DNA of 64,000 bases from Glycera tridactyla (GCA_965644265.1 OZ286459.1:71052001-71116000), one strand, 5' to 3'; counted from the first letter of the stretch, positions 1,023-46,097 are shown. The notes: generated by a model from the letters alone, not told the origin. Numbers and translations are program-made.

Positions 1023-1095
1023 CTTCAGTTTTGTCAACCTGAATCTTGCGCGTTGCTGTCGCCTCCATGTATCTCTTGGCTTGGCATGCTTCTGG
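1023..1095 (-). CDS. Weak candidate cassette exon: 69 nt in frame (EACQAKRYMEATATRKIQVDKTEG) or 73 nt with an internal stop
   Basis: Acceptors cctatttgtacag|ccag|, donor AAG|gtaaca; phase 1-1 if the second AG is used. No homology support. Confidence 0.3.
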
Positions 1096-4000
1096 CTGTA
1101 CAAATAGGCACAGTGTGATGATTCATTCTATATTGGTGGTGAGTGTCATTTGCACATCCCTCACTTTTATTACACCCAGGAGACAGCTAGTTTAACTCTT
1201 ACATATGACAAATCCAATGAAGTTATCATAACCCAAGGTTTGATGCTAATACAACATCTAGATTATAATATTATCAAATCCACTAGTTCTCATTTATTTT
1301 TGTCGATCTGCATGAAATTTGAGTTTAATGTAAATGGTCATTTCGCTTTCAAGCAGAGAAACTGTAACTGTAACACAAAATGGGATTTCTCATCCTGTTC
1401 ATATTCTAAGTGATCGAAGCAAAAAATGACCATCAAATTCCTCCATCTGTAACACTACATTCTCCACATCTATATCCTGAGGTTAGATGATATAAGATTC
1501 AAACGCTAGATGATCAAATTATGGTGCCCTTATGTACCAGAAAATCCTGAGAAAGAATCATCGGCTGTAGAAATTGGATCATGATAATGTGATAAAATTC
1601 AACTATACCACTTGAGATTTTGGAACGAAGTGCAGTATCTTTATAGAAAATGCCGGGAGCAAAGCTGATACATGAACATAGCAAGTTGAGGGTTTGTATA
1701 TGTATGACCAATATTTGACCACCCTTCGCCATATATGACGCCTGGGGCCATTTCACAATGAATGCCGAAAATATGAGAGGTTACACATCATTGCTACAGC
1801 TTCCGACAGAATCATTTCTATTGAGAGCACCTTGTTCTTCTAGCAGGACAGGTAATTGAATGTGAAAAAGGCCCCTGATCATCAAATGGCTAGTCAGGCT
1901 TCCTGTCCCGGCTACTATCGGTCCAGATACACATCTATCATGGGCCATATGCTCCCAGATATTATAGCCATTATTCAGTGTCCCATCCAACTTTCGGTCC
2001 TCAAAGAGTTCCCAGAATAATAAAGTAGTTCTTGACTCATGTTTGCACGGATCAGTGTGTTTGTTGAGAAAACAGCAACTCCCGCCGCTAGAAATTTCTA
2101 ATCAGCAAAATGTGATCTCATAGAATCAGAAGTGACAATATTCAACTAATCTCAGCAGTGCCATATTTTTTCAGCAATTCTCAAGATGAACCTTGAGGGC
2201 ATCGATGCATATTTCATGTATGAATAACTTTTCTACACTTGTTTCGAGCGAATATGATAACTAATGTTATAGATATGATGAGATGTGACCATCTGTACAT
2301 ATGTAGGAGTCATACTTCTTGTAGTCTCATAATACCCCTCAGTTTTTAATCTACTCCACTGAGGAATCTTTCAATGAGCTAAAAAATTATGGGGATACTG
2401 GCGAGGACAGGACAACCACAAGAGTCTCAATGGAATAGCCACTTTTTTTTTTTTTTTTTTTTAATACCCAATTGTTGTTTATCCAAGCTTCAAGCTTGAG
2501 CTGATGTGAAGTACTGGCCCTGGCTGTGTCCGGCCCTGGGGTGTGAGGTTGTCCAAGCCTACACTGTGCAATGACCTTAAGCATCAGAGCATCCCTGGAT
2601 TGCCTATTTTGTGTTGCAAATGACCTGAACAAATGACAAGGCAATCTAGATTATCTGTGTAACAAGTAATATGATGCAATATGTCAGAGTTATTACACAA
2701 TACCAGCAATGGCCAGTAGACATTGGCCCCTTGCTCACTGCTGCCCTTTCATCAACACAGCACTGCTCTTATGCAATCCGGCACATTCCAAATCCTCACA
2801 GATCCACTTGCCAGCTGTGCTTTCATTCTTGGGTCAGCTCAGTTGAATACTATTTGGGTGCAAGCAGAGAAAGAGATCTTTTCCTGTGAATAAATAATTT
2901 GTGGCTTTAAATTATTTTCCTGGATGGCATACTCAACTCTAAGATAATTTTCATAGCTGTGGTCAGCAGAGGTGAAGAAAAGACAATATATTATCTTTAT
3001 CTGAAGTGCATAGCAATTTTCCTCGTTACAGTGATCTCTTGAATAGAACTTTAGAGAGATTTTCAAACACATTTCTAAATTTTAGAAATAGGACCTATAC
3101 AAGGACATGCTAATCCAACTATTCACAAAGAAACATGACAGTTTGTAAGATTACTTTTGGGATGTGGGAAATTACTCATGGAAGGAATTGATCAAATATC
3201 TTGTAGGTCTAGGACCAGAGGGCATGGTGATATGGGGAGGAGGAGGGGATTGTTGCATGGACTCAGCAATACCATATGGACTTTGCCATCTCCCAATCGT
3301 TGAGCAATCTCTATGTTCACCAAGGCAGCCCTGCCTCTGACCCAACAACCCGACAACCAACGTAATCAGACAAATGTGCTGTAGTGGCTGTGCAAATGTT
3401 CCCTGTATTGTGTAAACATTGTAATCATCAAATAAATATTCATCAAGCAACGGCTTCCAGCCTACATTTCCATTAGAGTAAGATCAGACCAGACTCGTCT
3501 TACCATGTTCATCCGAATCACATATTTTGGCACGGCAGCAATGGCCATCTTTACTAATTCATGTCCCCTGCTGTGCTGCACTTCTATACGAATGAACTCC
3601 TCTGAGAAAGGCTAGAAACACGCTTTCATCAATCAGGTCTTTACTCAAAATTTCCGTTATGGTCAACTGCTAAAATTTCATGAAAATTAATATTAAGCCA
3701 TTTTTCACAGCATTCCACCCCTCTTTCTAGAGGTGCTGCTTTTCTCATGTATGAGAACTAGTCTCATTTTTAGCCAATGGTTTAAAATGCAAGTCAAGAT
3801 CTTGACTGTTTGAGACAGATGCTACCCTGCTCCAGTGTCCAAGGCTCCTGTGTGAGCCGAATAGAGTCTAATCTGTCTCTCTCACGAGCATGAATTAGGA
3901 AATATCACCATGAGGATCAAAGTGTCAATTCGAAGCCCACTGATGGATGGCATTATGGACAGAAAGCTCATATGTTCATCATGTCTTCTTCATTGATTGG

Positions 4001-4937
4001 ATTTGCGAGGAAGCGGTCTCATCATTGCTCGAGGCAACCTCACTGACATAAATTACTTAACTTCCCATTTGCGTGTATCAACAGAGAAAAGTGAAATTTG
4101 GGCAAATGGATGGGTATCTCAGCCTGCAGGCGTAAGCATCGTGGTCAAAGGTGGTGAGAAGTGAGGATGACGCCAGCCACGTGGCAGGAGACAGTCACCT
4201 GGGGAGGCCCAACCAGGTCCCCGTACTCCATTAACGCTCCCCCTGTACATGTTTGCTGAGATTTGCAATAATCCCAAGGACCATCATCAGAATGCGCCAA
4301 CCCTTCTCTGATGGCCCCTCGGGGGTGCCCGTCAAATCACGCCACTCCGCACCAGCAACACCTTACCACTGGTCACCATGGCAACTAGCATTAGGGCGAG
4401 GCAACCAAATATGGAGTTATGTGCTGCAGCATACAGTTGGCCGTGCTTCACGACCATTTACTGGTCAACGTATTGCATCTTCTGTCTTCAGCCCTAATTG
4501 ATAACCTTTTGCAACCTTCCAAGCCATCACTTTCTATCCCCCTGGTCACCCTCGTGACTGTTGTCCACCTACTTCAAACCTTGAATAATAGATGCCTGCA
4601 ACAACACTTACATTGAGACACACCTACATGGGTATTCCAGTCCATATTGTCCTCAATACATTTTTTATCAGCTCTTCACTTAACCATGTGTATATTGTGA
4701 AATGACCTAGTTGAATGTATACCCAGAATTGTGACGATAAAATCACCCTACAGACAAATTCACCTAAATGACTATGTTAGTTAGTCGATGATGTTAGTCG
4801 ATGACAGAATTGTCTTCCCACAAGATAAACATTGCACATGGATCTGTTCATCTTTACAGGTCTGAAGAAAGAATGGTAGGATTTATGGAGAGGCAGTCAA
4901 TAATGTATTTTGTATTGCATTGTGTATATTTAATTGG

Positions 4938-5357
4938 CAGATATGAGCATGGAAAGTGTGATATAAAGATCTGGAGGGTGTCATTCCAATACATATACAA
5001 TGATGAATAAGGAGGTTCATTCTGCGGTACCTCTATTTTCCATGGTAGAATGAGCCCCACGATCTCCACAATCACTCACAATATCTTATAGATGTATACT
5101 ATTGAAATTGTCTGCACTACTGTATACATTGGCAATGATAGAATTACAGATATGAGCATGGAAAGTGTGATATAAAGATCTGGAGGGTGTCATTCCAATA
5201 CATATACAATGATGAATATGGAGGTTCATTTTGCGGTACCTCTATTTTCCATGGTAGAATGAGCCCCACGATCTCCACAATCACTCACAATATCTTATAG
5301 ATGTATACTATTGAAATTGTCTGCACTACTGTATACATTGGCAATGATAGAATTACA
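4938..5357. repeat. 209-bp direct tandem duplication next to an assembly gap
   Basis: Units start at 4938 and 5147 and differ at the two positions I found (aataagg/aatatgg, cattctg/cattttg). Confidence 0.95.
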
Positions 5358-6067
5358 ACAAGTTTACAACAATTAGAGGTAAAACACAGCAATCAAAATA
5401 TATNNNNNNNNNNNNNNNNNNNNNNNNNNNNNNNNNNNNNNNNNNNNNNNNNNNNNNNNNNNNNNNNNNNNNNNNNNNNNNNNNNNNNNNNNNNNNNNNN
5501 NNNNNNNNNNNNNNNNNNNNNNNNNNNNNNNNNNNNNNNNNNNNNNAGCAATAGCAATGGGATTTCGTCCATATTCAGTGTGTAAAATCACCTTTGTTAC
5601 TCAATAGCTGAGATAGGGATATGCTTTTCAATAACTTCATTTATGCAGTGAATATCTCAACGTCATATACCCATCACAAATCAACTGCAACTTAAATATA
5701 AAAACCATAAATATGATAGTCAATGTGAACTGTATCCACTGGGAATGCTAGATACAGAAATACATGGTATGATTAGAAAAATAAGACTAGAATCAATACA
5801 TCCAATCATTGGGGTTTATTGAGGTGATCATATAAACTAAAGGCATTCATACTGATCTGGAGTACTAGTATGAGTAATGGCAGAGAGATGATAAAAATTT
5901 CAGGTAATTCTAAGGTGCTTCCATGTCCTTCCATGTCTCATGGACCACAAGTGTTATTTTTGCATATTATCTCAATACCTTGATTTTGTTAATGTTCAGA
6001 TATATGAAGTTGCAGCTGACCTGTGATAGGGTGATGAATCAAATATCAACAGAAGAAATTTATTTAC

Positions 6068-6154
6068 CTTCTTTTTGAGCAGTGGTTGGAATAATGGCAG
6101 CTGCATGTTGAGCAAGAGCTTGCTGGAACTGGCCGTAGGCTGCTGGGTAAGTGG
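6068..6154 (-). CDS. CELF3-6: CELF exon, 87 nt, [29 protein letters not shown](G)
   Basis: Acceptor actttgtttcttgcag, donor AAG|gtaaat, phase 1-1; YPAAYGQ...Q[K/R]EG precedes RRM3 in CELF3-6. Confidence 0.96.
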
Positions 6155-7811: not shown

Positions 7812-7845
<34 letters not shown>

Positions 7846-10800
7846 CAGCAGTAGCAGAAGTAGTAATAGTAGTTGTAGTGGTGGTGATAGTAATAGTAGT
7901 AGTAGTAGTTGTAGTACTAGTATTAGTATTAGTAGTAGTAATAGTAGCAAGAATAGTGGAAGTAGTGGGGCAGTAGTAGTAGTGGTGGTAGTTGTTGTTG
8001 TAATTGTAGTAAGAGTAGTAGGAGAAGTAGTGGGGGCAGTAGGAGGGGTAGAGCAGGTTTTGCATATGAGTGATTAGCGGAAAAATCATGTGGATGATGG
8101 CATAAGGATGAATGTATTATATCTCATCTAAATCCAATTGCTGAACCCTGCCCATTAGAATGAGAAGCTTCTGTATTGAGAGTAGGTATGATGATTAGTA
8201 TATACATCAAACAAAATGCACACCATGAACTAGACATGGATGACCAGACACTAGGAATACATGGCAACTCTACTGCCAAATCCCAAACAACACACTGAAC
8301 CAATATTATCACATATTAATGGAGCAATCTTTTGCACCTTGGCTATATTCGAAAGCCAGCCATGACTACCAATTAAATTGAGGAAAAAGATTTCTCCGCT
8401 TCTTTAAGAATGGTCATAGGATGAGAACAAAGTACATCATCTCTATCAGAAGTGGAATAGGGCATTGGCAAGTGTGGCTTTCTGAACACAGAATATATAT
8501 AGTTTAGAAATTTCAAATAGATTCGGAAGCTCACAAATAACTTTGCTGCTTCAGGTTACACATGACCCCGGCTCAATGGTAATCCTCGAATTTCACATTC
8601 TAGAATTCAGACTGGAATAAGATGCATGGGAAATCACCAAAGATGTGCATTTTGCATTGACTTTAGTTAACTAAATGAGAGAAGGAAAGATGAGAGAGCC
8701 AGTCTGTATAGGGAAGGGGACACATTGGAACATCAAATATCAATTGACAACACATTCCATGAAGCACACCATCTCTTTCTGTGAAACTAAATTCTACCAT
8801 CATCCTGGGCAAGTTAGGAAACACAGTTGAAGATCATAGACACAGCAAATGTGTTTCTACCATGTTTGCCCTTTCTCTTTCGATATCCATACTTGCAAAT
8901 ATATGCATTGACTACCGCATTTTTATCCTCATGCCATTACCATTCTGAGATGGATCTGAAATGAGCTAAGTGAAACTTGAGGGTTTTTCTGTTTGTGGGA
9001 ATAAGTGCAAGCCTACATTTTAGTAGGCATGTCTGGATATGATCATATAAATTTGCTTGTAACATCAATTCCTCTTGCTAACTATTCCGGCAGTATTTCT
9101 GATTAGCTTACATATATTCCCAAAAGTAATTTCACACTGCATACAATTTACAGTGCACCAGTCAAAAACACAGAAATACTTCATTTGATTATGGATGAAC
9201 AGCTATTGCCACATCATTTCAACTTTCATACTACCTAATGATACCTGAAAGATATACTATCTTAATCCGGTATTTGCGGTTTCGGCCATGTGAGGTCGAT
9301 TCTACCAAATGGAACTTTCCAGTTCAATTTGTGTTCAAGTAATTATGATTTTATACGGTATCAAGGAACACTACCCATGGACTGCTCTGGCTGAATGAGC
9401 TTGGAGCAGTTTGGAAAAATGTTGATGTAGCAACACAGTAAGAAGGCATGCCAAAGCTGTCTTCTTCATGGAATGTTACTTTTTTTTTTACTTTGGTTGC
9501 TGTTTCTTCGACGACAATCACATGCTGGACTGATACTCTAAACAACAGTCAAATTCCAATAAGAACCAAACAAACTGAATATGTAAACCCAGCAAAAACA
9601 CACACATTTTAGATAAATTGTCAAACTCAAACCATATCATTTACACACAATGGATGCCATAACAATTTTAGAATATGCCAAAAATTGGAAAAAAGGACAT
9701 AAAAACAAAACATCTTACAATACCAACCAACACACACCACACACACTGTGTTTGACATCAGCCTCTTAGTTTGAATATGTGTTTTGCATATTTATCTTGT
9801 ATATTTAGTAGAATTCTTTCATCAATTCCCCCAATTCAACCTATCACATATATTACAAAAAAAAAACATATTTGTGAATTTCACATAGACTGGCATCTGA
9901 ATTGTGAAATTCAAGCAACTTCACGAGTTTTCACAATCCATATGCCAAAATATCTGAAAACTATGATGAGCATGTACATATTCAGAGTGCTTTTCCAGTG
10001 ACAATTATCTATATGCCTTCAATCTGATCAGGGGGTAAGGTGGACCAACAGACTGTTTATTTACCAATATGCCCACAGTACTTCAAACTGTGCTGGCACT
10101 GCAGCAGTCACTCTTTTCCAAAAATATTCTTGACACGGCAAAAGAAATGTAACCACATAAAATGTTTAAATGAAGCAACAGATGTGGTGACGATGCGGAT
10201 AGTTAAAGCATTTTTTGGAGGTTAAACATGAGGAAATGCTGCAGCAACACAAGGAGCACAAGTGTGAACACAGTGGTAGTGAAACAAGTCTTGAAGCCTG
10301 AGCATTTGGTGGCACAATTAACAGATCTGGCTTTTACAGTTGCCGCCTGCCCCCAACATCGCAAACAAATGACACTACCATTTTGAAATGAGAGAGCAAT
10401 CATACACAATAGCTCAGAAAAAACCCAAAGTTTGAGTCTAAATTTTGCCACAAATTTTTATGTATAAAATGATATGAATTTTTAGATACAACTCTGTAAT
10501 TTTCAATTGTTTTCAAGTGATAGTGGTTCGTTGTTGATGATTTACACAATGCAAGGGACAGGCTAAAGGAGCATTTGTCTGTCTAGAACTAGCAGAAGTG
10601 CTGATGTAAAACAAAGAAGGTTTCATTACGCAGGCAAATATAGGAGGAGGCGTCACCTATACCGGCGGCGTACTGTTGTACTCCCGAGTAGGCTGGTTGT
10701 AGGGGGTCGCCATTGGCAACCGCTTGTGCTGCAAGAGGCAGAGCTAGACTTAACAAATGGTTACCAAGGGTGAGGCGTCATCACCTTGGTGACATCAAAA

Positions 10801-16800: not shown

Positions 16801-19800
16801 CAAAAACTAGGAACTTTCATAGTAAACTAAATAGTTATCAGATATAGCTGTTTTGTGTTTCCAATATCACAAATTTGCAGCTACATTCCCACAAGTATTT
16901 TAGTCATATTAGTAAGTCTCAGGCCATTATAAATGATCTTCTGACTAGATAATGCACAGTGAGTTGGCAAAAATGCAATGTGCCGAATATTGGGACACAA
17001 AGGAAATAGACAGACAACAGCCTGCATTATGCACAAACGAGACTATAGAAGAAAGATACGATGAGGACGATAATGATCATGACGACGATTAGGGGGACAA
17101 TACAGAAATGTGACCATTAATAGATTACTATATACATTTTGCTTCTTTTTGATCCAGAAGAATGTAGATTGATTTCGGCTCTAATGGGAACAAAATGGAA
17201 ACAGCAAACTGTCACAAAACAGAAACAGCAACCCATCCCACACTAAAACCATCCCTAACTTGCATCATAACAGGCCTACTCTTCAGGTAGTCTGTCTACT
17301 GAAGAGAAATGCTCACTGATACATTGAGCAGAAAATCATCTATGATATTCCTATGAATTTGAGTTTTCTTCTTGCTAATAGACAGAAGCACACTTCACAT
17401 CACACATCACTTTGCCAATTTTGATAGTTCTCACTAGCAATACTGTTAGTGATTGTGGAAGCACAATTCGGCATAATAACTAATCCGGCTAAAGAGATTG
17501 TACAATCTGACAGCTGTAGCCGACACCACACATGTCTGTGACACCTCTCTGACTCAATCAATCCTCACTTCAACCAGGTTTACACTAGAGCAAGAATATC
17601 CAAACATCTTCTTTTGTAGGCTTGATATCTGAGCATTACAGAGAATGTGGCATCACAAAACCATCAATTATGCTAGGATTCATCTGTGGTTGAATCTATG
17701 TAATAAATTCCATTTGAAAATCATAAGTCATCATCATCCCAAACCAAAAAGTTCAGAATGATCATTCATCTGATGGTATCATTAGCAATGAAATAATCCT
17801 TCAAAAGCTTGAGAATTCATGGCCGGGTGTCAAAGTCGTATTCCTGTTGCAGTCACATCTGCATGCATGAATATGCACTGAGTACAGATTTTGATTGACA
17901 ATGATCCAACTAGGCCTTGGCAGGAGCAATATGTTCTGTATTGCATTTCAATGAGGATAAATTATTCAACACACGCCTCAGAATTGACCTATCACATGTC
18001 TTCAATACCTATGAGAGTATGCATGTCAAAAGATGTGGGTCAGATCGAGAGATAAAGAGCAGCTCTCATTATCTATTCAGATGCTTATATACAAATCGAT
18101 CATAATCTGCAGTGGGTGTGTAAAGTAGAGTGCCCGGTACCCAGAGAAATACAGGAAAGACAGGAGGTGGCATCTCAAGGTGGGAATACACTCGTTTCCC
18201 TATCCGCTTAGACCATATCCCTACAAACTGCCATCTATTGTTGGTGATTGAAATGAAAGCATTTCCATCTGCTGGATGAAAAAGAAGTGAAGTCTTGATC
18301 AATTAGCATATAAAAAAGTTAGGTTAGTGGAAGTTTGTTTTGATCAATCAGCATGTAAAATGTTTGGTTAGTAATAGTTTGGCTTGGCCAATTAGCATGA
18401 AAATGTTTGGTTAGTGGAAGTTTGGATTGGCCATGCATCAGCTTGTGTTTGTATCGCCATTGCAGAGGAGATCAGCGATGCTGATAGGTCAAATTCAGAA
18501 TCAAGATGGCAGCCTCCAGGGTGAGCAATAATATGGTCAATATATAAACATATAACACGGATATGTTTAGAATTGGTCAAATTTGAAACCAAACAATTTA
18601 CCTGAAATTAGTCCTATGGCTGTGAAAAGGCAGAATGAATAATTATTTTTAGTAAGTTAAACTTAGATTTCATAGAAATCGAGTACAAACACCCACTCCA
18701 ATGATTTGACAATACAGGTAACATTTCACAAATTTATTTCTCTTTACTCATGATCTCATGAAAAAAATATATATGGCTATAAGCCGTCTTTTTGTAAGTT
18801 GACTTTTGAAAGCATGGTGTAACTTACCGGGATACTGGGCTACTCCATTGGCATATACTTCGGCAGCCTGGCCATTTGTCTGTGGCACAGGGAAGGTGGT
18901 GACTGGCGATAACATTGTTGGAGGTGCACCATTAATAGCTGTGGTCCCTGCTGGTAAAATACAAAAGAGATACACGCTTGAAATCCTGAGTCATCTTGCT
19001 GGAATCTTTGCCGATTCTCAATTCCACAGATAGCCTTGTGGACACAAGCAAAAATTTGTGGATGAGAACATTTTTCTATGATTATCCTGCACTTTGTCTC
19101 AGAATAGAACACACAGGTCCTTGTAGCCCAGATAGCTATTTCATGAGAAGACAAATTATTGATTCCCATTTCCCATCTAAAAATCACAAGCAGCTCAGAT
19201 TAGAACATAGCAACTGTCCGTGTGTGTGTTGTTTGTGTGTGTGTATGTGTGTGTGTGTGTGTGTGTGCATGTGTGTGTGCGTTTGTGTGTGTGGATGGAT
19301 GTGATGGCTGATGAAGAAGAGGTAGGTTCGGATGAGCAGTGGGTCACATGTGGAATGTGATGAGAAAATGATGGGCAAGCAAGCCGTGGCTCTGACAGCC
19401 TCCAATCACATCTTGAGACAGAATCACTAGAAAGCGTGAGCGACCTGCATCAAAGATCAGCTCCTATTCACACCCGTCTATTGTACAATTTACACTTGTG
19501 GCTTCCTGGGCAAACCACTGGCTAATCTGATCACTTCAATGCATTCACTGCGAGGCTGCCATTTGCTGCAGCCCTACCCCAACAAGATGAGAGAATGTCT
19601 GAGATGGCCTCAATGTCAGACATGTGGCCAATGCCAAGCACGCACTCAATTCAGTATGAGCAATTAGTCCAACTTTGAACTTTTAATTAGGTCTCAGGAA
19701 CAAATTATGTGTAACACAGAAGCAGCTTCAAAGGTGACAGCTGGATTCAGACATTTCCTGGCTGTACATGGTTTCACAAAACCATGCATGCCAACATGAA

Positions 19801-22800
19801 GCAGTTCCCAAAGCCTGTCATTCATCTGCTACATTCAATCAAGATCACAAGGAATATGTCATGAAATCATCAAATATGGTCAAGCATTGGCTTCATGATC
19901 ATCTTTAGATGATTTCAACTTCTTTACACTAACTCTTCTACATTTTCATTATTGATTATTCAGGATCTGATTACTTTCAACCATTCAACCATTTTGATAT
20001 GAGAGATCATGTCTGCTATGCTTTAACTAGTGTATATCCAAAGATAGCTAGGAAATGAGTGAGATTTTATCTCTTCCTGCTAGGGGGTTATCCTGCAGAA
20101 TTTGCTGTGTGATTTGTCTCTGAGATCTTGGCTTGAAAAGGTGGCAGGGCATATCAAGTCAACATGCAACACTTGCATGGCAGATTTCTTGCACTTCAAA
20201 ACTGTGCAGAATAGGGTGTAATTAGACGGGCGTGCCAATCAGGCTTCATATAAAATGAGACACATGTTCAAGGAAATATGAAGTCAAGCTGTTTTTATTG
20301 ATCAAATAACTCTTTTGTGACAGTAGTCAGAATGTGCAATATATATTTCTTCCTATCATTGAAAAAAACCCAGATTTGATCTAGAGATGATGAGAAGTAT
20401 TTTTGGTAATCGTTGTTATGATTCGTTGCTGAGCCCATGTGAGCTGTGAGCTCAATTGATTGATATATTAGTGACAAAAGAGTACTGAACAAGAATGTAG
20501 GGAATGATGCAAGGATCAGATTTCTTACCTGTAGTAGTGGGTGTAATGGCACCAGTTGAGATTCCATTGGGGATAAGGGCATTGGCATGTTGTACTTGTG
20601 CGGCAAGAGCGGCCATAGGGTTGATGTAGCTGCCTTGGGAGGCAGCAGCAGCCATGAGTGCAGCCTGTTGCTGCATCAATTGCTGAAAACGAGCAGAGAA
20701 AATATGCATATTCATGAGTGAATTCAACTCAGTTTATCAAGTGATACACATACTGAAGTACCATTTGGAGCTTCTGAAAAAATCGGAATCCTGGCACAGT
20801 TCAGAGAAATATCATCATCAGGAACACATAGGTACTGAATCATGTAGAATGAGTCAATCTTCTTTCTCTTGGGTGAACAATGCTCTAGACTTTATATATT
20901 TTGTTATTTGCTCATTTTATCACCAATTGCTGATTTGTTCTCATCGATATCGGGACCAAATGAGCAAGATAAATTCTATTGCCTTCTATCATGACCTTCA
21001 ACCATGCGAATCACCTTGCTCATCAGATCACAGGGCTCTACATTAACTTTTTTCTTCAGCTCTCCTTTGGGCAGGTGAAGTAGGATTTTTACCTGCCCTG
21101 CCTGTCATTTTCACCTGCCCTCCTGCATATAATCATAGCCCAAATGATGATTGGGTACCTGCCCGTTGGGCAGGCAAATTGATAAAATCACCTGCCCTAA
21201 CAGCACATCTGCCTGCCTGTGCCAGTAGGGTAACCATTAGTGTAGAGCCCTGTATCAGGGTTTCAGATGTGATGAATGTTCCAGAGGAGTTCTTCCCTCT
21301 CACACATGAGTGGAGGCAAATGTTGGAAGCAATGCAATCACAACTCATATCCTGCGGCTATGAAAAAAAAAACCTCAGCAACTTAATCATGTTCCTCATC
21401 ATACGTTCCTCATTACCAGCCAATTTTCCCTGCCTTTGATAATGCAAGATGCCACTGAAATCTCATTTTGCTGCCTTCCCGACAGCGAGATCAACTTTTG
21501 ACATGAGTGAACATGCTGTGCCATCAATTAAGGTGGCTCTGACAACTTTGGCCCCAGAGCTGCCAATCAATTTGACTAGCCTGTTTAAACTCCACTGGCA
21601 CCAATCAGTGAAAGGCCTGACATCCCTGACTTTTTGTCCCTTCCAGCATTTGCCGTAAATGTCAAAGATATTTTTCTCCCAGCTGAACAAGATGGGGTTC
21701 ATGGGACATACCAAGAGGAAGTCAAATGTCACAGCTGCTTACTCGGCACAATTTCCTTTTTTTATTTTTACCATTCATATCATTGTTACCATTGGAAAGC
21801 AGAGATACTCTCATACAGAATGAACATTTGATTAGAAGGTTTAAGTCAGCCTCAGTAAATCATCCAATCTCAAGCATTCCAGCTTTTTTGCATCGATAAG
21901 TTAAAGTGGACTAATCCCTGATGGAAGGAGGTAAAAAATGAATGTTCTGTGATCCAATTTCTGCGGCAATTAAACAGCTGACTAATCACCTGTGCATGAT
22001 GGGAAGGGGATTCAAGGTGCTTCACTATCCCGCCAAAGGCATGACTAGCAATAAATTGTCACAGCCATCACTAGCCATTCAACTGTCACATTGTAAGAAG
22101 TAGGATTTTCCATGATATGCTTGGATTTCATGCTACCTTTGCAGCAAATCGGAAAGGATGCCTTCATTGCTCCTGATTCAAACCCTGGACCTAACCTTGC
22201 ACTCAGCAACCCCGCAATAATCAGCCAGAGGCCAGTGCATGAAGAAAGAATTTGGACATTTGAGAAGGATGGAAGATGCAAATTGAAATATTCAGTGAAC
22301 CCTGCGACGAGTGACCCCCCAACAAGAGATCACCTCTGACCGGAGACCGCTTTTCAAGGGCACCTTTTTTATTTGACAAAGTCAAATATACCTTTGACGA
22401 GAGACCGCCTCTTTTGAGACTGAATTTTGTAGACATATAGGGTGGTCTCTCGTTGCTGGTTTCACTGTGAGCTGAAATCTCATTTGTGGATCAAAAGCGT
22501 TAATGTGCCGCAGCTGTGTGGGTGAGGTGGTTCATAAACTGGAAATATTTATCATTTCCACATTATCGCTATGAAGTAATCACCTGCTAAGCAGGCACTC
22601 TTTAAAACTGAGCATGCTAAGCCTCCAGATGCTATCTATTAAAAGTACACATTTTTATGTGAAATTAAATCTGTTGATCCAGACAAATACCGCCAACACT
22701 CGAAGGTCTCGCGAGCAATAAGTTAGAATTAAAGTCTAATGGGCACGCAGTGCAAATCTGTGTGGTGATTTGTCACTGTAGCCAGATCCACACTCTCATG

Positions 22801-23781: not shown

Positions 23782-23837
<56 letters not shown>

Positions 23838-26800: not shown

Positions 26801-29800
26801 GAACATTTCTGAAGTGCCATTTCAATCTATATAGGCCAATTGGTAAACTGTCAAGCACTGATTCTTGTGAATTACAGGGAGCTTGAGCTGCCACCAAGGA
26901 TTTGAAAATGGAAAGAAATCAGATTCTATATCTAGCACAACTACCTCGCAGACAGTCAGCAAAAGACTCTACTCACTACTGAGAACAGAAACCAGACGAA
27001 TTTATAACTGGTATGACTGAGTGGTGAATAGAAGTGAGACTCTGCTATGTGGAGTAAATACTAGTACGAAGATCATTCAAGCCATACAGAATCAACTGAT
27101 AACCACAATTGGTTATATGATTTGGTCATATGGTTAATAACCACAATGATGAGTGCTTTATGTAATAGACCCACCCCATTTATAATTTTCAGAAAAGCAT
27201 GTGGGTTCATGAAATACAGGTATTTCAACTGATCTCCTACTATTGTCATGAAAGATAATATTGAAATCCTGGAGCACAATAAAATCTGCTCGATGGCTGG
27301 GCAGCGGAGAGTGATATGACCGGAAAAAATGTTATCAGTTTGGCGATGGTTACCATGCAGACTAGGCCACATTTTCAACCACTTATCCAAGATAGCATCG
27401 CTAATTGAGATGCAGAGCACTAGCAAACAAGTTTCCATTGGCAAATGCATGATGGAATACGTCTCTATGAGAGTAAATGGGTCAATTGTTTCGTGTGCAA
27501 TATTTACTCTGCCGAGTACAGAGGGTAAATATTGCTGGCTTTGATGATGGTGTCGGATTCTAATGAGTATACATATAGGAAAGATTGATTGTATATGAGC
27601 GCAGCATAGTCTACGTACCTCATGATTTACATAGGCGCCAGCACTTGGCGACGTCTGAAGAGAGTTCGCCATCTGCTGTTGAATCAGCTGCTGCAAAAAT
27701 CAGAAAAACATGCTGCGTCTCAGAACTGATGTGAAATACTGTGTGCAGAGCCGAGACTCCAATAATAATTTCTGAACTATACGAGTCAACTGGTGGATCC
27801 TACTGTCACAGAATTTCGCCTCAGCTGCAAACATTTCAACTTTATATGAGAGATGCTGAAATATTCCAAGCACACAGGATAGTACTAACAGCTGCGAGAT
27901 ATAGTGCTCTCTCACAAATACACAAAACTCCTTCAATTATGGATATTCAAGATTTTTACAGCCTACATGCTGATATCTGAATGTGAGTGTACAAGCAGTG
28001 ATGTTCATCAATGTTCAGCAATGATTTTCAAGTCAAAATTAGCCTCAGTAGCCTGCATTTACCTGCAATTTGTGTGATTGTGACCTAAGATATTTTCTTC
28101 TGACGACTTCTGGTATAAGTGTTGAAAGTTGAATGACATTTTATGGATATAATTGAGACAAAGAGATGGGGAAAGCTGTTAGTGGGTATGCTGTCATCAT
28201 CTAACAAGATAATGGAAGCAATCAGAGAACAGGTGTGCCTTCTCTTTGAAGCAAGCCACTTGAAATGCCAACTCAAATTTGGCTCAGAGATTTCAAGAAA
28301 AAGAGCATCTGCATCAAGGTAAATGGGTGGTTTAACATTGACTGCTAGTAGGGCCAATCTCTTGCAGAATGGCTCGCATCCTGCGCCGCCATGGAATATA
28401 TACTTAATTGTGCAGTCTGATTAGATTATTCCTTCATTTACGATAATGGTGGAGGGATCAAGAAATGTTGATGGATGCAAGGCTAGAGTACAACTCTAAA
28501 CAAGATTCCAAGAAGTAACCTTTCGCTAGATTCAGAGGTACCCTTTAGTTTTTCGATACCAAGTGGAACAGAACCGTCATGTTTATGCCTACAAGACAAT
28601 TTATTGAATCCCCACACCAGAAATTAGGCCAATTATCTATATAATGCTGCACAGAAAAGTAGCACGAGTCCCAGAGCCTTTTCAGCAATCAAGAGCAAAT
28701 ATCCATCAGAAAAGCAGATATATCTGACAAAAACGTGACAGTGAGAAAAGCCAGCAACTGCAGTTAGGAAACTGTCATGGAAAATAAGGGCCACAATTGT
28801 AACTAATGCTCTCCCCATCAGGCCACACTCTGTGCTGATTTGGGCTTCCCATCTCCAGCCCATCGATATGGATGCACTGATGGAGCTTTCTGTGTTCAGT
28901 AATGTATATTTACTACTGTCATGAAATCAGTAGCTGTGAACCCAGTAGCCAAGATACCACATAAAATGACATATTACATCAGCAAATATAGTGTTCTTTG
29001 TCTTAAGATGGCATGTTTTTTCTTACTTGGCAATCAATGTCGAAATTGAACAGGTCATGCCAGTCATCCACCACATAATCAAGGCCACTGTAACGGCGGT
29101 CAAAATGCCATGCTTACTTCCAGCTTTTATTCCACAATAAGAAAAACTGGGTGCCTACATAAAAAACGTGTACTGCAGCACTGTGAAGTCCTTTCTTCAT
29201 TTCATCCTTCCTATATCAGATACCTTTGTTTCCACACTCTCTCCAGCCATCTTTTCGGATGATAGTGGTTCTTTTATGGGCATTGTTTGGGGGTGATGTG
29301 TGTATTTGTTTGTGAGCAATGATGAAAGGGTTGGGTAATTGGCTGCCTTCTCTGATAGCATCTCTTGTAGGAGTTCTTGTCATCAGTCATGCCGACTCAA
29401 GTTGTTATCGGTGCAAGGCAAGTTACAAGGCTTCTAAACGTCCAGATGGAGTGAGAATGGAATCAGCTTAATGTAGCGAATGATGTATTCACCGTGACTG
29501 CCACACCCTTTTCTGTAGGTATTAATGTTCTATAGTGCAGCTAACTCAATGTGACTCGTTTCTTTCTTGAAAAGCACAGTATATATCTGGCAAGTTTACA
29601 TGGTGATTTTATCTGTTGACAAGGGATTTCAAATCAAGGATTTCACTCCTCAACGTATGTGCTTTCCCTTCTCATCAATCATGAGAACAATATCCATGAA
29701 AACCCTGTGAACTGATGCAGTAACATAGAGCCGAACAATGTAGCCATACACACTTGTATACAGTAAAGAACAGGAAGCCAGAGTATGTACCTACATCATC

Positions 29801-32800
29801 ATTCTCATCTCATTACTTGCTTCTTGTTTGCTTTAGTTTGAGGAGACTGTGAATGGCTTGATCAGAACCTGATAATTTTTTCTTGCATGATTGTGCGTTC
29901 ATAGGGTCGGACCAATTACCGCTAAATTTGATGCGAATGTGTTAATTTCACGCCGAGGACACTCCCTGCCAGGAATATAGATGAATCGGGTATTCTTCCT
30001 CAAGGGCTGAATGCCTTTGTACAATACATCTTTTAGGTGGTGATTTCAAGCTATCGATCCTACTCCCCTCATGATGTAATGTGTACTGCTCGCAGTTGTG
30101 CACGATCAATAGAGGCCAATCGATGCAGACTTCCATTAACCCATGACCTGACGGCCTTCCCCGCCACCAGCCTGATGAGATATCATGGGATACTCTTTGC
30201 TTTAGCCTAGTCGTATTTAACTCTTCAACGATGGCCCAAAGCACAATCTTGACTAAATTCATCTCTATCAAAGTTAATGGAATGAAACACTTTAGCTCTT
30301 TCCCGGCATATACCCACTTATGTCAGTTGCCACTAATGCTTAGATGCCACTTTACTTGCCTGATATTAGCTGGATTAAAGTGGATTTGATGTACCCATGT
30401 CAAACTGATGAAAGTGCAAATTACCCACCAGTCGACTGACAAGAAATTTCAAACAATATCTCAAAGGCAGCAGAAGAATCCTAGATATACTTTGTTGATT
30501 CCATTCATGATACGTATAAGCCACAATAACATGAAGTAATTCTTGAAGATGGAGGCCTGTGCAAGTTAACCATTGTGCTTCCTTCTCTAATTGACTCCCA
30601 TCTCGCAGACAATCTCATTGATTTACTGCTCATATGTCTGAACCACCGAGTGACTGGCTAACCAAGGTTGATTGAGCTAATTCCTTATGGTATTCAATCT
30701 CTGACACTTTGAAGTGGGAAGTTCGTACAATGCACGCCAGAGAAGCTTTGTAACCATGGATATGAGGTTGAACTGGGCAAGACGGCTTTGTTCCTGCACA
30801 CACTGCATTGAGAGACACACAATATGGTACGAGTACCTGAATTCAAGCTAGGAATGATCCCAATATTTTCATACCTATCAATGTACAAAAGAAACTCTGA
30901 AATTCTCCAATTGTGGTTGGCAACCTTACAATTCCAACATGGCCCAAAATATTGTAACGATGCAGAGCCATCCACATCTTGCAATTCCCTGCTCTCATTA
31001 CATGAGCAAATGCAAGTGATACACATGATACTGTATCACTGTAGTATAGGGGTTTCACAGAGCAACAGCAATGAGCCAAACCCAGCTGCCTAATGTTTTC
31101 TGGGATCCATTTCACTTTACTTGTAGGAAACATTGAAAATTTCATAGATGCTATTAATTCCTACACTTTCCTACAGAATTCTATGACAACATGAAGCACA
31201 CACTCGATTTTGCCAGCGTCATATCGAAACAGCCCCTACCTGCATAGAATAATCCCTTAATAGCATTAGGCCTCCTGCTGCCTGCTAGACAGCTGATTTC
31301 ATCAATAACCCATCTTGCACGTACAAATGACTATTTTGAGATGCTAGGCTCACCCAACCCCAATTTATCAGTCATGCAACTTTTTTTATAGAAGCAGTTT
31401 CAAGATGAAATAAAGCTCCGATGGGAACAGACTGAAGGGTATTATTCTCCAAGTGTATGTGATTGCACCGTGATGAAATATCTGAATGTCACAGGCAAAA
31501 CTGTCTGCTCATGAAACATTATTGACCATTAACTATATACCTGGACCATGTATACAATTCAAACACAAAGATTTATAGAATATAACAACAGGCACCTTCA
31601 CTCTTCAGGAAAATTACTTAATCTGGTGGATAAGCTGGTCTTGCCAGACCCAAGACAGGTGTCACATTGTTGAGTGAAAGTGGTTTATGAATCTGATGTG
31701 GGTATTTGCACACACATGTAATGCACACAATGTGTCACATGTGAGGTTGGCGCCTGGACACAGTCCTGTAAGTATATCTACCAATCAATAACAATACATA
31801 TCCACTCCCAATGATGACTCCCCTCCACACTCCTCACCACCACCACCAACCCCACCCCATCCCCCAAACACTGGCAACACGAGAATATTGTCCAGCGAAA
31901 CCTTCCTATTTGTTCACACATTTCCTCTTCCCTGGAGTGCTGCCGAGGTGACAAAGCACCCCCTCCCCCACCTGTACTTGGCCAAGATGGCTGCCGCAAG
32001 AAATATTGATTGTCAACATCACGCCAGGACCACATGGGACACGTCTATATCCACGGGTGCCCACCAGCCTATTCATCAATATGATATAGCAAGTGGATGG
32101 CAAATGCATGTGTGAGATAAGTGCATCAACAACAAAAACGCATTGCATAAAACGTACCACATAGGTTGAGTGTGACAACCATTCATTGGTTTCAATCTAA
32201 GCAACAAATCTGTCCATCATATGATGGGTATGTTTCTAGATATGGTGGCTCTCAGGTATTTTTCTTTGTTTCATATAAGTTCCTAGAAAACAGTTTTTAT
32301 TTCAGATTTCAATTGCCAAGTCACTGCTTGCCCGTGCCATTTTAAAATTCTGTTCTTACAAGTGTGAATGTGTGTGTGCACATGTCCATGTGTGTTTAGT
32401 TTCCACATCAGCTCATGTGATTTTTTTTTTATGAGGCACCCACAGAAAATATTATCTTGTAAAACAATAGCATTTTAAGGCAGGGAATATCAATGCAATT
32501 GACAATAGGTTAAAATTCACCAGACAGCGCACTATATTGATTTCCATTCCTATTGGGGGAGGGACTATTTTCTGCTTTCTCTTTAGCGAGACATAAAAAA
32601 TGGACGTTATGAGCCTGACAGAAGTGCCGGAGTGCTGCAAGGTGAAAGCCTCTCAGCATGAGGCTGATTATGAGCCATCTCGCTTAGCGGTAATTAGTCA
32701 CACATTCGAGAAATGCACGCAGTAGTTGGTAAAGCAGGGAAAGAATGCCACCAGCGATGGATTGATGAATGCATCCCTAACAAGCTGCGGGAGTTCAACT

Positions 32801-35800: not shown

Positions 35801-38800
35801 GTGTTCCTTACTCTTCACTATACAGTAAAACCTGTCTATAGTGAAAAGTCACGGGCCCGATTTTTCTTTTCACTGTAGACAGGATTTCACTATATACAGG
35901 TCAATTACAGTGAAAAAAAAATGTTCGGGCCAGATTTTTCTTTTCACTGTAGGCAGGATTTCACTGTGGACAGGATTTCACTATAGCAGGGTTTACTGTA
36001 GTTTCTTGGCACATAAACTGACAGGAAGGCCCATAGATTCATTATTGTTTGATCCATCAGGGCACAGAGGTTGTTACCACTGATGATGACATACCAGAAA
36101 AGTACTCAAAATATAAAGCAATGTTAAATCACAAAAAAATGTCTCATGGTTGCATAGCCCTATTCTCTATGCTGCGGTAACTGTTTTGGCATGATCAGAT
36201 CGAAAAAGCAAAACGGAGTATATAAGCAGGATGGCATGAAAAGGTATAGTATTGAGGAGCAAATGGTCTGAATAGCAGCAAATATTCACCCACTATCCCA
36301 ATGCAAGCTGCAAAACTACTGGTGATTTTGTGAGTGAGTATGATAATTCTTTATTCGAGCAAATCCTTCACAGCTATTGAATCTTTCAAGTCTGAGATTT
36401 ATTTGCACCAATGACAATCCTCACACTCTGCTCATTCACATGACTCATCAAATACAATCCACACAACAGTTAACGCTCACAAAATTATGGACTGACAAGG
36501 ACGGCTACAGGACTACATGTATCTAACCCAACTAGGACTCCCTTGTTCTTAAACAAGATTTGTTGGCCAGCTCACAGCTCTGATGATTACTTGGATTGGC
36601 CAGAATAACTGTACGCTGATGGACATTCATTTTCGTCAATTCAAGTCTTATTCTACATGGACTACTGAGGTGTGAATAGCAAGTTTGAAGTTAACTACAA
36701 TCTAATACTATATTACTCATGCATTGTTCAGGTGAACAAATTAGCATCATGCAACCATGAAATCTCCAGTCAACAGCCATATTTCTTGTCATCCAGTCAA
36801 TCTTGTTTATTTTGTTCTGTTTGTGACTACATCGTCTCACTTTCAATGATGTCTCACCATCAACCCACGTGAATTAAAAATGTTCCCATGTGACTACAAT
36901 CTTCCCTCCGGTTCATCAATATTTCACTGGCTCCAGACATCAATCATGCTACAGGCTGATACATGTTTTTTCTCCATTTAAAAGCCAAACTACAGCTAAT
37001 GACATTCTAAACTAGTAGAATTCATGTCTAAGTCTATGAAACAGGGGCCCCCATGCAAGGAAGGAGGCAGTTGCTCTCTCCGAGAGGAAGCTCGGTCCAT
37101 TTTCGACTAACATACTGAATGTATGTCCATCGTTAAGGCAAGCCAATTATGTCAACATCACTTGTCCCCAATCAACCACAGCGTCCCTAAACCAATTGGC
37201 CTGAGGCATACATAGTGAATCTGCTCCAAGTTGCTAGACTACGGCTAGAGGATAAAACTACTACATACACTATATCAATATTCTTAGAAGATCCCATACA
37301 CTCAAAAATTCATCCCCTCTTCATTTTTTCAGACACAGTCACACTCAAGCGGCATTTCGGTGTTATGTTTTCTGAGAAAACCTTAGAAATTCACCTGACC
37401 TCCATCAAAACGGACCCAGAAGTGACCATGAATTTTGCTGAAATTCGGCATGAACTCCAAACATACATTATATGTGTCTGGTGAATACAGTGGTTAGAAC
37501 CGGACTAGCACAAAAAGCGGCACGTGATCTGCTGACTCGGCACTAAATGTGAATAATGTCACATACAAGCAGTCACAGGGTTGAGTTTTGAAATGCAACC
37601 TTCCTGCCCGATCCTCAAACCAATGACCATTTTTTTGCAGTGGCAATCATCAGCCGAGGGTGCACCTGTCACTGCTGACCTCAAACTCCTACCTTAGGAA
37701 GAAATGATTATGGAACTTGGCCCAAAAAGAGTAACAACCCCCATCATGTGATGCAAGGGTTGTGTCCAAAATCTCTCCACCAAAAAAAAAAAAGAATCCC
37801 CTAGTCCACTATATACCCATCACTGCACTATGATCAGAACCACATAATTTGGTTCGGTGTTCATTTTCATATTTGATTCATTGTGCTATGATAGAGTTGA
37901 ACTAGGTGAATCCGCATTCGAGGTTGCATTTTTCATGTGTTTTCTATGCAGTTAGCAGGGATGAATTCAGGGTATTTTGCAGGATTGCAAAGCAGTATTG
38001 GTACAGGATGACCAGCATTGGGGAGGATGGCAGTAGTCTATTTGTTGAATAGATCAGAATAAATGAGAGGATTGGGAAAGTGATAATATATATCAGATAT
38101 TAGGAGAGGTAGAACATATCTTGAATGATGCTCATCAGATATATTCAAAACCAGAGGTTAGATAAGAAGACATTAGGTAAAAAATATTCCCTTCTATAAC
38201 CTACATCTACATGAATGTCCTCCTATTCACGTTAATGGAAGTAGGTGGAATAAACAGGAAGATGTCAGTTTTAAATATTTCTGGTACCAGGAATAATGGT
38301 AGCTCTTGAATTGATATCTTTCTGCCATACATGGGGTGGAGTGAGAGTTGGAGAGAAAGACAGACAGAGATAGTGAGGATTAAGTAGTCTGATCTCTAAG
38401 GAGAATATAAAGGCATTTAAATTACCTGTGTGTAGGGGTCGGAGGCGCCAATCTGGAAGTAGGGGGCAGGTTTCAATAGCAAATCACCACGGCTCAATCA
38501 GCCCACAAAATACTCACAAATCAGTGTCAATCAATTTAGAATCATGCTTGGATATCCAAACACCATATCCCAGTTGGTGTACATCATCAATTAAAAAATG
38601 GCGAGATTTCATATATTTAAATTTCATATTTCTCTTAAAGCTAATATCCTTGCCTCAGTTAAGTTTTGAATACTGCTAATATACCCATAAACCAAATGAA
38701 GAGGTTTATAAAACCATCTCGCTGAATTGAATGAGCAGCTCAATGGAGGGCAATCTTTGGGATTGAAACATTCAAATATCATATTTTTTGTGATGTGTAT

Positions 38801-41800
38801 GATGCTAATGACAAGAAATTATACTGGCAAGTTGCAAGGACAAGATCTGCCCAGAGAATTATTATATGTTTCCCAGATGGTTCCTCACATTTAATCACAC
38901 GGGCATTTTGCCCGGAAAACAGTATCAGATAATAAATACAAAACACAACTTGCTTTTGCATGGAAGGCCATACACAGCAATTTCGGCATCCCTTTTTTGC
39001 AGAAATCTAATGCCAAAGATGTGCAAACAAAGTATTGCAAATCAATCACTGGAAAGTCCACAAAAATTACATTTGCTTCACCACTACAGATTAAACATGC
39101 TAAACTGTCATCAAATAAGCAAGATAATGTTGGTGAAATATACGTTTTCTACACCAGATTCTATAGCAAACTGAAAGAAATACAGGTAACATATATCATC
39201 CAGCATTTTGTAGACATTTTGTACAAAATTTGCCTCATTTGAGCACATCAGCTACTCATGTTCTCAATCCCAAGATAAAATGCAGAAATGGGATGAGGAA
39301 TAAACAACATGGTCAAATAACTGAATAGCCATAGGAAAATGACTGAAGGATGATGACAATGGTAATGACCATGCAGATGAAAATTTCGCATTTGAAATTT
39401 TGGTAAACACCAAGTTTGAAATGGCGATACAGTTGTGTCTAGGGGTTTGCCAGAGGACCAGAGCAAATGACTTATAGCCAAACACTGGTAGTAGTCCTTG
39501 ATTAAAGTGGCCTGACCTGAATGAAGATGGAGAACATAAACTGGGATATGGGTGAACTCAAAATTAGAGTTTGAGGCACCTATCTTCTTGAAATTTGGAT
39601 TTTCAACGGGGCAACAGGGTCAGAAAAATGGGCAATAGAATGAGAGAAAAAGAACAATGCCAATTTCTACATGGTCCAGGCGACATGAATGACAACAACA
39701 ATACATGATTAGGAAATGGTGCGCAGAAGGCGAAAATATACAAATATGCAATCCCTCCCCTGCTATGTTCAAAGGACATGCCACATTTCTACATATTGCC
39801 GTAGAGTAATTTCTCTTGAGTAGCAAGACTGTTTTGTTTTAATGTGTATTATCATTCCAAAAGATGCAGATGTTCTCAATGACTATGCATCCACTGTCAG
39901 CTCCTCCACTCTAGTTTAGTGCCATGAATATTTCAGCAAGATTCCATGCCTAGATGACAGTGTCAGCCCTATACTATGCCAATATACTGAAAAAAAATAT
40001 GCGATCGCAGATGAATACACATAAAATGTGATCATCTGATATTATTTCACAGATTGATCATTGTTTTTCATTTACAGTCTTCGATAGGCAATCTCCCATT
40101 GGGAAAGAGGATTAGAGATATCATTCTCCTGAGGAAATTTGGGCAAATGGGTGAGTTATCAGGAGAGCTGGCCATGATACTCTAATGATAAGGGGGGATG
40201 AACAAGGCAGAAGAGAGAAGGACTTCACAATCGTGTGAGACAGATTAACGAACTGAGTAGGAACATGTAACAAGTGATGCTTACCTGAGCATATGCATCA
40301 GAAGCTCCAACCTGCAAAGTAAAATGAAATAACATTTAGAATTACGAATCTGTTAATGCTTAGATAATAACTAATGCAGTCCATTCTGAATCCATTATTT
40401 GGTTACTTCCATAGCCAAAAATCTTGATTTATGAAGGGAAGTACACCACACAGAGCACGGCCTTTGGAATATTTTTGCACTCACGCTACATGAAGTTCAT
40501 GGTACTGATAAGTTTTTTCAGTGAAATCCTCAGGTACGATACTCAAATGATATTCAACACCAAGGTCATAAGATACACGCAAAATATTTAGTCAAACAAT
40601 ACCTCAAAATAGTGAAGCAGCTTGTGATACAAGGACAAACAAGTCTTTGTTGGAATCCATGTTGCCAACTTTGGAAATGTATCAGTTTGAAGTACAGTAA
40701 AGAAGAATAAGGAAGAAAATGTTCATTTACCTGTGGATAAGCACCATAAGCTCCAAACTGGGAGAGTGTGAAAGGATTTAATAATCCGAGAGGTCCCGCC
40801 ATTTGTTGCATTCTTCTGAGTTGTCGTTCTTTCTCTGTGTCAGCAAACTTTACCACCAAACTGGATGATGCTCCCTGCATTCAGAGGTGAAATGAAGGAT
40901 GGTTAGAAGGGATGCGGTACAGATGTCAAGCGGAGGCAGAGGAAATTTAGCATGTTCAAAAGCCAGATACAAGTGGAGACAGTCACCGAGTGATATCAGC
41001 TGAAGGCTAATCAGTCGCTCATGTAATCCACGTGGCTTACTTGTTCATTTCCAAGACAATGTGTGCACAGGCGAAACACTCCAGCCTTGCTGATGCAGCT
41101 ATTGCGAAGTCAGTCAACAGTGCAGTGTCCTGCCAGAGCAATATTATCACATTTGGAGGTAGGTCACTAACAGACGCGGGTGCTTATACAAAATACACCC
41201 AACACAGCTGCATGCATCAAGAGATAACATTAGCATGAGCCAGCAATGGGCAAGTTAACAAAGCTTATATAGTGGGTATCCCTCATATCAGTTAATTTAT
41301 GTACATACAAATGGTCTAGTGTGAGAGAAGCAAACCGGGTGTGAACTGTATAGCAGGGTGGCCGGCCCATGTGCTCGGGCTAAGGCTACTGATATCAATC
41401 GAACAGTTGTACAAACATGCCAGGGCTTTGAGGCGGCCTGACTCGGTTTGACAATAGTGCCTGCACGGCGACTGATTTGCCAGCCAGCGTGGCTGGTGAT
41501 GCCTGCTGTGCCCCCACTCCACCCCCCTCAGCTGATATCCCTCACCCACTCACACCCACCCACCCACGGGATGACTCACACCCATGGCCAACAAATACTC
41601 GCATGTCCATCCATGTAGATTAATGCTCTCGCATTCACATCAAGTTTCACTGGTATTGCAATTCCCCGCTAATACCCCCATTCATACAAACATGCCAATC
41701 GAGAGATCTAATAAGTTCATGCATGCCAGAGAAATAAACCTCCATCAACAAATTCAAATCACTGATATAACACTAACAAACTCACCCCGATACCCATGGT

Positions 41801-46017: not shown

Positions 46018-46097
<80 letters not shown>

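Follow-up and report, generated by a model that had tools for sequence, protein, structure and literature searches.

Proteins of the CELF family regulate splicing, mRNA stability and translation in neurons and in muscle; activation, repression and localisation functions reside in the divergent linker between their RNA-binding domains RRM2 and RRM3. In Drosophila, 35 splice forms of the family member bruno-3 have been cloned. They include cassette exons that lie within large introns, 3' splice sites used alternatively and a choice of 18 nucleotides (nt) before RRM3, and exon gain inside the large introns is documented for the same gene (Kandul & Noor 2009, PMC2767349). The principle of heavy linker splicing is not new: it is established for flies and appears in mollusc annotations. 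Multiple isoforms are mentioned in a 2026 CELF review, which describes no such linker system. Here we analyse a 64,000-nt stretch of the Glycera tridactyla genome (GCA_965644265.1 OZ286459.1:71052001-71116000; the window, with coordinates counted from its first letter), whose minus strand carries the middle part of a CELF3-6/Bruno-3-type gene, as located by RNP-motif and ortholog searches. A first-pass annotation had proposed that nearly every junction between RRM2 and RRM3 offers a frame-preserving option, and that this lineage may have expanded linker diversity by duplicating short peptide modules. We find that the linker carries short candidate exons and splice sites that are most likely used alternatively. 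We put the probability of this reading, which would make the locus a new instance of an already known kind of linker splicing, at roughly 60% from the sequence evidence.

Splice-site scans of the linker

The linker comprises about 200 residues, encoded by five small exons with long introns between them (Table 1). All seven frame-preserving elements of the first-pass annotation were found where it had placed them: two 27-nt microexons (27A and 27B), a 72/69-nt exon, a CAGCAG tandem acceptor, an 18-nt microexon, three in-frame donors of the 66-nt exon and a weak 69-nt exon. The annotation's arithmetic is right as well, given that all 288 of 288 element combinations are open in frame and encode 288 distinct proteins, although this figure is a ceiling only.

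AG and GT sites were scored with a simple position matrix, and the opposite strand of the same introns served as the control. With acceptor and donor scores both at least 3.5, frame-preserving segments of 9-81 nt number seven on the gene strand and zero on the control strand; the 27A, 27B, 72-nt, 69-nt, 18-nt and 12-nt forms account for six of these seven. A phase-aware scan of the five linker introns with both scores at least 2 returned nine candidates on the gene strand and three on the control strand. Listed elements make up six of the nine, and the other three encode Arg/Lys/Cys-rich peptides unlike the linker. Such segments with Arg/Lys/Cys-rich peptides, three in number, lie on the gene strand at 31838-31939 (84/102 nt) and 32521-32580 (60 nt); their splice scores are moderate and they were taken as background. 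The splice sites of the optional elements are as strong as the constitutive ones. Exonisation of a repeat or transposon is ruled out, because every candidate region is single copy in the 2-Gb genome.

Long introns can contain fortuitous open stretches between an AG and a GT, and chance of this kind was weighed for each element. For 27A, 27B, the 72/69-nt exon and the 18-nt exon it is rejected: the control strand yields none at the same thresholds, and paralog similarity, codon-position pattern and composition, given below, are each significant, so that a chance origin of these strong candidates is barely credible. As candidates, 27A, 27B and the 72/69-nt exon stand well above chance, and the 18-nt microexon is above chance in the splice scan. 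The same explanation does hold for the 69-nt segment, for which it is the best reading; it also fits the +33 donor, with its poor score and undistinctive peptide, and the three other gene-strand candidates, which are clearly background. At the thresholds of the 69-nt segment, 6 kb of sequence gave two candidates on the gene strand and three on the control strand, and the segment was rejected as an exon; its peptide is unlike the linker, and no aligned ortholog has a similar insert. Hence, the excess of frame-preserving options claimed for the region probably stands for five of the seven elements, but two, the +33 donor and the 69-nt segment, are at chance level.

Apparent paralogy of the candidate modules

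The acceptor and donor of 27A score 7.1 and 7.6, the best pair in the region, and those of 27B score 3.8 and 3.9. The composition of 27A is linker-like, in the top 0.3% of random intronic peptides, and that of 27B is in the top 1.3%. Compared with the last 27 nt of the 144-nt exon, 27A is identical at 21 of 27 nt, and the likeness ends at the splice sites. Between 27A and 27B, 10 of 27 nt differ. Seven of these changes are at third codon positions and second positions have none; the difference is synonymous in five codons, and six of nine residues are kept (P=0.008 for random placement of ten changes, in a test that is small at 9 codons). The 144-nt exon tail, 27A and 27B share the pattern xGAxxxYxQ.

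A similar relationship is seen for the 72/69-nt exon, with acceptors scoring 6.5 and 4.3 and a donor scoring 4.8. Its 72-nt peptide resembles the start of the 154-nt exon (QLIQQQ...GAYVN versus QLMQQQ...GSYIN; Smith-Waterman score 42, shuffle P=6.5e-4), and its composition exceeds that of all 20,000 random intronic peptides. At the nucleotide level the two differ at 35 of 63 positions, with 10 of 21 residues identical. Eight of these ten identical residues are encoded by different codons (P=1.5e-5, a value to be read with the caveat that the alignment was picked by peptide similarity and covers 21 codons). Hence, 27A, 27B and the 72-nt exon appear to be paralogous to coding sequence next to them and conserved at the peptide level, in agreement with the duplication of peptide modules put forward in the first-pass annotation. 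A comparison with a paralog elsewhere in the genome was ruled out, since there is a single CELF3-6-type gene and the next match is 43% identical.

The 27A acceptor is directly followed by GT (AG/GT at 40312/40311; here and below a slash within letters marks the junction) and the intron is 20 kb long, a setting in which 27A could be a recursive exon that aids removal of the intron and is itself removed afterwards. Joining the 144-nt exon to 27A re-forms a donor that is weak (CAG/GTTGGA, 0.9) compared with the own donor of 27A (7.6), and 27A would therefore be kept rather than removed. On these scores the site was rejected as a recursive splice site. Neither 27B nor the 72-nt exon starts with GT, and recursive splicing leaves the coding-type conservation of 27A and 27B unexplained. 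We consider it very improbable.

Candidate microexon, tandem acceptor and alternative donors

The 18-nt exon lies 209 nt downstream of the 123-nt exon, with an acceptor of 8.2 (top 0.2% of all AGs) and a donor of 4.2. A second acceptor within it (CCATAG/GACT) would give a 12-nt form, 18613-18602, that encodes GLIS; at this junction heterobranch gastropods have a similar 12-nt insert, GLYS/GIYT. At the CAGCAG acceptor the 123-nt exon may start at 18950 or 18947, with or without one Ala (scores 5.9 and 5.4); two residues are present here in orthologs, in keeping with the longer form being the main one. The donors of the 66-nt exon score -0.9 (+0), 2.25 (+6) and -4.9 (+33). Use of the +6 donor would give YAAGIATYPAAY, which matches the ortholog consensus YAGIATYPAAY, and the +33 extension encodes a peptide undistinctive in composition. 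The 18-nt microexon, the CAGCAG acceptor and the +6 donor are plausible as optional elements on these sequence features. An acceptor 12 nt inside the 154-nt exon was dropped (score -1.95).

Beyond the window, a further CAGCAG acceptor lies 27 or 24 nt upstream of the main acceptor of the first RRM3 exon (score 2.1 versus 5.4; L002:4219-4246, in window coordinates -5781 to -5754). The in-frame addition would be AVPLPISVA, which resembles both AMPMFLLSP of Octopus sinensis isoform X3 and the choice of 18 nt at exon 13 of Drosophila Bru-3; this is possibly an eighth event.

Orthologs and related genomes

We aligned the model with about 20 lophotrochozoan and hemichordate proteins, and every linker intron position is an insertion hot spot in that alignment. 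After ...AYGAYxQ, at the end of the 144-nt exon, orthologs carry VST, VPST, VPQSVSSQ, VGVSPG, VGTSYE, VGGVPA..., YDPL, IP and longer inserts; VGASYD and VGTSYE, from two lophotrochozoan transcript or genomic fragments, follow the 144-nt exon directly and resemble 27A. At HYP/AQAV, the site of the 18/12-nt exon, gastropods and bivalves have inserts of 4-9 residues, with GLYS or GIYT in gastropods, GMIK in Patella and GECQVVEL(DL) in oysters. At ...QQYA/, most orthologs read YAGIA(T)YPAAY, the product of the +6 donor, and Capitella genomic DNA retains GCCGGTATAGGTG at this donor site. A longer third form is found elsewhere (GIGEYLT and GIGETILT in bivalves, GIGKT in Haliotis), with which the +33 form is possibly compatible. 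Before RRM3, many species have inserts of 4-9 residues. The first-pass annotation had named alignment with orthologous loci as a check; the same junctions are indeed variable and the GI consensus is matched, but the 27-nt candidates have no counterpart within 10 kb on the related contig described below.

Isoform series in the ortholog cluster run up to X27 in Mytilus and up to X11 in Haliotis, Pecten, Ostrea and Lingula. The 20 Mytilus isoforms compared contain 11 distinct linkers, which arise from four independent in-frame events of 12-33 nt; Haliotis likewise combines four in-frame events, and Lingula and Ostrea are alike. The same intron positions are variable in mollusc, brachiopod, annelid and fly orthologs, and on this comparison the multi-site architecture is ancestral and not a novelty of this lineage. 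The idea that the lineage expanded its linker diversity thus has to be narrowed: the junctions are shared, but the particular 27-nt and 72-nt modules appear lineage-specific, being absent within 10 kb in the one related, though distant, genomic contig, and twin paralogous 27-nt exons were found in none of the orthologs inspected. The Capitella gene is compact, with linker introns of only 50-1300 nt and no comparable microexons, and the Tubulanus ortholog spans 260 kb. In Capitella teleta (L011:48085-48120, 50590-50720), a +6 donor (VP) follows the 144-nt exon, and the tandem-donor sequence GGTATAGGT is conserved at the end of the 66-nt-exon homolog, at the fourth junction.

Several observations weigh against alternative use of the elements, in addition to the small size of the paralog tests and the choice of the 72-nt alignment. 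The splice matrix is a simple, human-derived one. The composition of the 18-nt exon is not distinctive. A search with the last two exons and the downstream DNA listed no RNA run for this genome, and in a collection of 5.8 billion proteins no fragment is identical to the product of the 144-nt exon (closest 96%). The sole related genomic contig (Logan), which is distant at 77% exon identity and resembles the Glycera locus in the exon only, lacks the 27-nt candidates within 10 kb. At the first linker junction this contig (L012:10127-10294) uses a +24 donor that inserts VPQSVSSQ: the normal donor of the 144-nt exon is weak (CAG/GTCCCT, -1.7), a strong donor lies 24 nt downstream, and this fits the VPQSVSSQ transcripts. 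By these donor scores, the junction in that species is varied by a donor shift and not by separate microexons. 27A, 27B and the 18/12-nt exon fit the neural microexon programme (SRRM3/4, eMIC) in that they are frame-preserving, within 3-27 nt and in a disordered region of a neuronal RNA-binding protein, and the very strong acceptor of the 18-nt exon is a further likeness. The microexons have TGC within 20 nt of the acceptor, but so do the constitutive 144-, 154-, 66- and 87-nt exons, and no neural-microexon signature can therefore be claimed. The RBFOX motif UGCAUG is not enriched (76 observed versus 93 expected).

Much of this would also be expected if the 27-nt and 72-nt segments were relics or decoys, once coding and now skipped, leaving one main linker with NAGNAG and GI variants. 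Such pseudo-exons would agree with the lack of a listed RNA run and of an identical protein fragment and with the absence of the modules from the one related contig, and signs of purifying selection record history rather than present use. However, the splice sites are intact and equal to or stronger than constitutive ones, the frames are open, and orthologs in many phyla use inserts at the same junctions. A nucleotide divergence of about 40-55% would be expected to have cost disused modules their frame or their sites. We therefore regard relics as unlikely, and alternative use of the elements as the preferred reading.

Gene model and assembly

Core exons were located by tblastn with orthologs and by splice-site inspection (Table 1). 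Two (CA/TG)-type microsatellites, at 45965-46156 and 19215-19313, translate as His-Thr repeats and gave spurious tblastn matches.

Table 1 Features of the Glycera tridactyla CELF3-6/Bruno-3-type gene, in window coordinates unless given otherwise
Feature	Coordinates	Strand	Basis
RRM2 second half, 80-nt exon (GCAFVKF...HGSQTMP)	52869..52948	-	motif scan, sequence, Pfam RRM_1 E=6e-5
144-nt constitutive exon (...FGAYGAYPQ), linker start, phase 0-0	40731..40874	-	sequence, ortholog matches
27A, candidate microexon, 27 nt, VGASDAYAQ	40285..40311	-	splice scores, paralogy, composition
27B, candidate microexon, 27 nt, IGASDPYTQ, apparent paralog of 27A	38426..38452	-	splice scores, paralogy, composition
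72-nt candidate cassette exon; 69 nt from 27687 via CAGCAG	27619..27690	-	splice scores, peptide paralogy, composition
154-nt constitutive exon (...TPTTT), phase 1 at end	20529..20682	-	tblastn, sequence, splice scores 8.8 / 6.9
123-nt constitutive exon, CAGCAG tandem acceptor	18828..18950	-	sequence
18-nt candidate microexon, A-IGLIS in phase 1	18602..18619	-	splice scores, ortholog inserts at junction
66-nt constitutive exon	10663..10728 (10630..10728 with donor extensions)	-	sequence
In-frame donors of 66-nt exon	+0 (10663), +6 (10657, adds GI), +33 (10630, adds 11 residues)	-	sequence
87-nt constitutive exon, phase 1-1, last in linker before RRM3	6068..6154	-	tblastn, 93% identity to Capitella and P0001
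Assembly gap, 143 N, last linker intron (87-nt exon to RRM3)	5404..5546	.	sequence
'Weak 69-nt exon' segment, EACQAKRYMEATATRKIQVDKTE in phase 1	1023..1091	-	acceptor -1.2, donor 2.1
RRM3 exons	L002 4219-4076 and 2226-2099 (next 10 kb of chromosome)	same strand	tblastn, sequence

The RNP1 motif GCAFVKF of RRM2, followed by the family signature at the start of the 144-nt exon, places the gene in the CELF3-6 / Bruno-2/3 subfamily. The 48-residue product of the 144-nt exon has 281 protein matches at E<=1e-10 in a library of 1.8 billion proteins, and the named relatives are CELF3/4/Bruno-like proteins from Capitella, Tubulanus, Octopus, other molluscs and Lingula. From the 144-nt exon through the C-terminus, identity to these orthologs is about 76-82%, which places the organism among the lophotrochozoans, with none of the compared proteins coming from a close relative. 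RRM3 lies outside the window, on two exons of the same strand 5.8 and 7.8 kb below coordinate 1; this C-terminal domain (GPEGCNLFIYHLPQEF...KRLKVQLKRPKD) is 94-100% identical to that of ortholog P0001, which matches RRM_1 with E=8e-19. RRM1 and the first half of RRM2 are not inside the window. Joined from the 144-nt exon to the stop, the core exons give a clean frame of 281 amino acids ending ...KRPKDANRPY. The 80-, 144- and 128-nt exons equal Drosophila Bru-3 exons 7, 9 and 14 in size, and 154+123 = 277 nt equals D. melanogaster exon 10 (PMC2767349), so the exon structure is conserved across protostomes.

None of 267 related proteins has a match near the gap at 5404-5546, no exon adjoins it, and the ortholog alignment leaves zero residues unaccounted for between ...AQKE and GPEGCN; the core frame is therefore independent of this gap. 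Five more assembly gaps all lie upstream of the linker elements. Those at 43886-44034 and 46175-46311 are in the intron between the 80- and 144-nt exons, and those at 55799-55951, 56430-56582 and 63164-63336 are upstream of the 80-nt exon.

Discussion

If the elements are used, the options would be two 27-nt microexons, a 72/69-nt exon, an 18/12-nt microexon, a 3-nt tandem acceptor and a 6-nt donor shift (GI). Each choice would add or remove a short linker peptide with the RNA-binding domains unchanged, and the optional elements do leave the RRMs untouched, as the first-pass annotation had proposed. The number of linker isoforms would then be perhaps ten to a few dozen, as in the fly and mollusc orthologs, and not 288. 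Selection on the peptide may have kept the 27-nt modules as old duplicates of the end of the 144-nt exon, and the 72-nt module as an old copy of the beginning of the exon that follows. What seems modestly new here is the apparent origin of some optional modules as old copies of parts of neighbouring exons.

All insertion points fall in a part of the protein that is predicted to be disordered. In an AlphaFold2 (AF2) model of ortholog P0164, built from a 25-sequence alignment, RRM2 and RRM3 are confident, and the initial part of the 144-nt exon product folds into a strand and a helix packed on RRM2. Its tail is disordered; residues 100-296, which contain every insertion point, have a predicted local distance difference test (pLDDT) score below 50. 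Changing the number of Tyr/Gly/Ala-rich or Gln-rich modules might alter the self-association or partner binding of the linker, and this in turn could tune the splicing or translation activity of the protein, or its localisation. We infer such a mechanism by analogy with the hnRNP Gly/Tyr-rich exons discussed in PMC10423696 and with CELF2, for which condensation driven by the hinge (divergent) domain is reported. In a bolder version, which is speculative and rather improbable, splicing would select one to three xGAxxxYxQ modules from an array made up of the 144-nt tail, 27A and 27B, and the 72-nt exon would be an optional duplicate of the Gln-rich segment that opens the following exon. Duplication of exon ends and of exon starts would in this version have produced a 'valency dial' in the disordered linker that sets self-association or partner recruitment per cell type.

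If the predicted modules are used, the locus would offer a clean invertebrate example of linker diversity arising from duplicated exon parts kept by selection, and natural length variants for probing linker function. It opens no new question, given that in-frame linker splicing is documented in Drosophila and annotated in many lophotrochozoans.

Tandem NAGNAG acceptors, reportedly described by Hiller et al. in 2004, have apparent counterparts here in CAGCAG at 18950/18947, at 27690/27687 and at the upstream RRM3 acceptor, where both AGs score well. The alternative Gly/Tyr-rich exons of hnRNP proteins (Gueroussov et al. 2017, as cited in PMC10423696) are likewise short and optional, and they add Tyr/Gly modules to a splicing regulator within its disordered region. 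However, the linker of CELF is rich in Ala/Gln and not in Gly/Tyr, and the likeness would be an analogy of mechanism only.

Comparable variation is seen in the CELF3/4 isoforms annotated by NCBI in molluscs and brachiopods. Their in-frame inserts sit at the same five linker junctions, are combinatorial and are of similar size (9-33 nt: ARNISLPVT, DMNIS, VILT, EAYLT, GEI, DFSPINT), although the insert sequences are mostly unrelated and the isoforms are pipeline annotations rather than a described system. Drosophila bruno-3 belongs to the same CELF3-6-type family, shares the 80-, 144- and 128-nt exons and has many in-frame events between RRM2 and RRM3. The fly events are at other positions and in other sequences, and they are cDNA-cloned forms where those of Glycera tridactyla are predictions. 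New exon 8 of the fly gene came from intronic sequence, whereas the Glycera modules look like duplicates of neighbouring exons. With several options between RRM2 and RRM3 and variable junctions in its orthologs, the Glycera locus matches multi-site in-frame linker splicing at the level of sequence.

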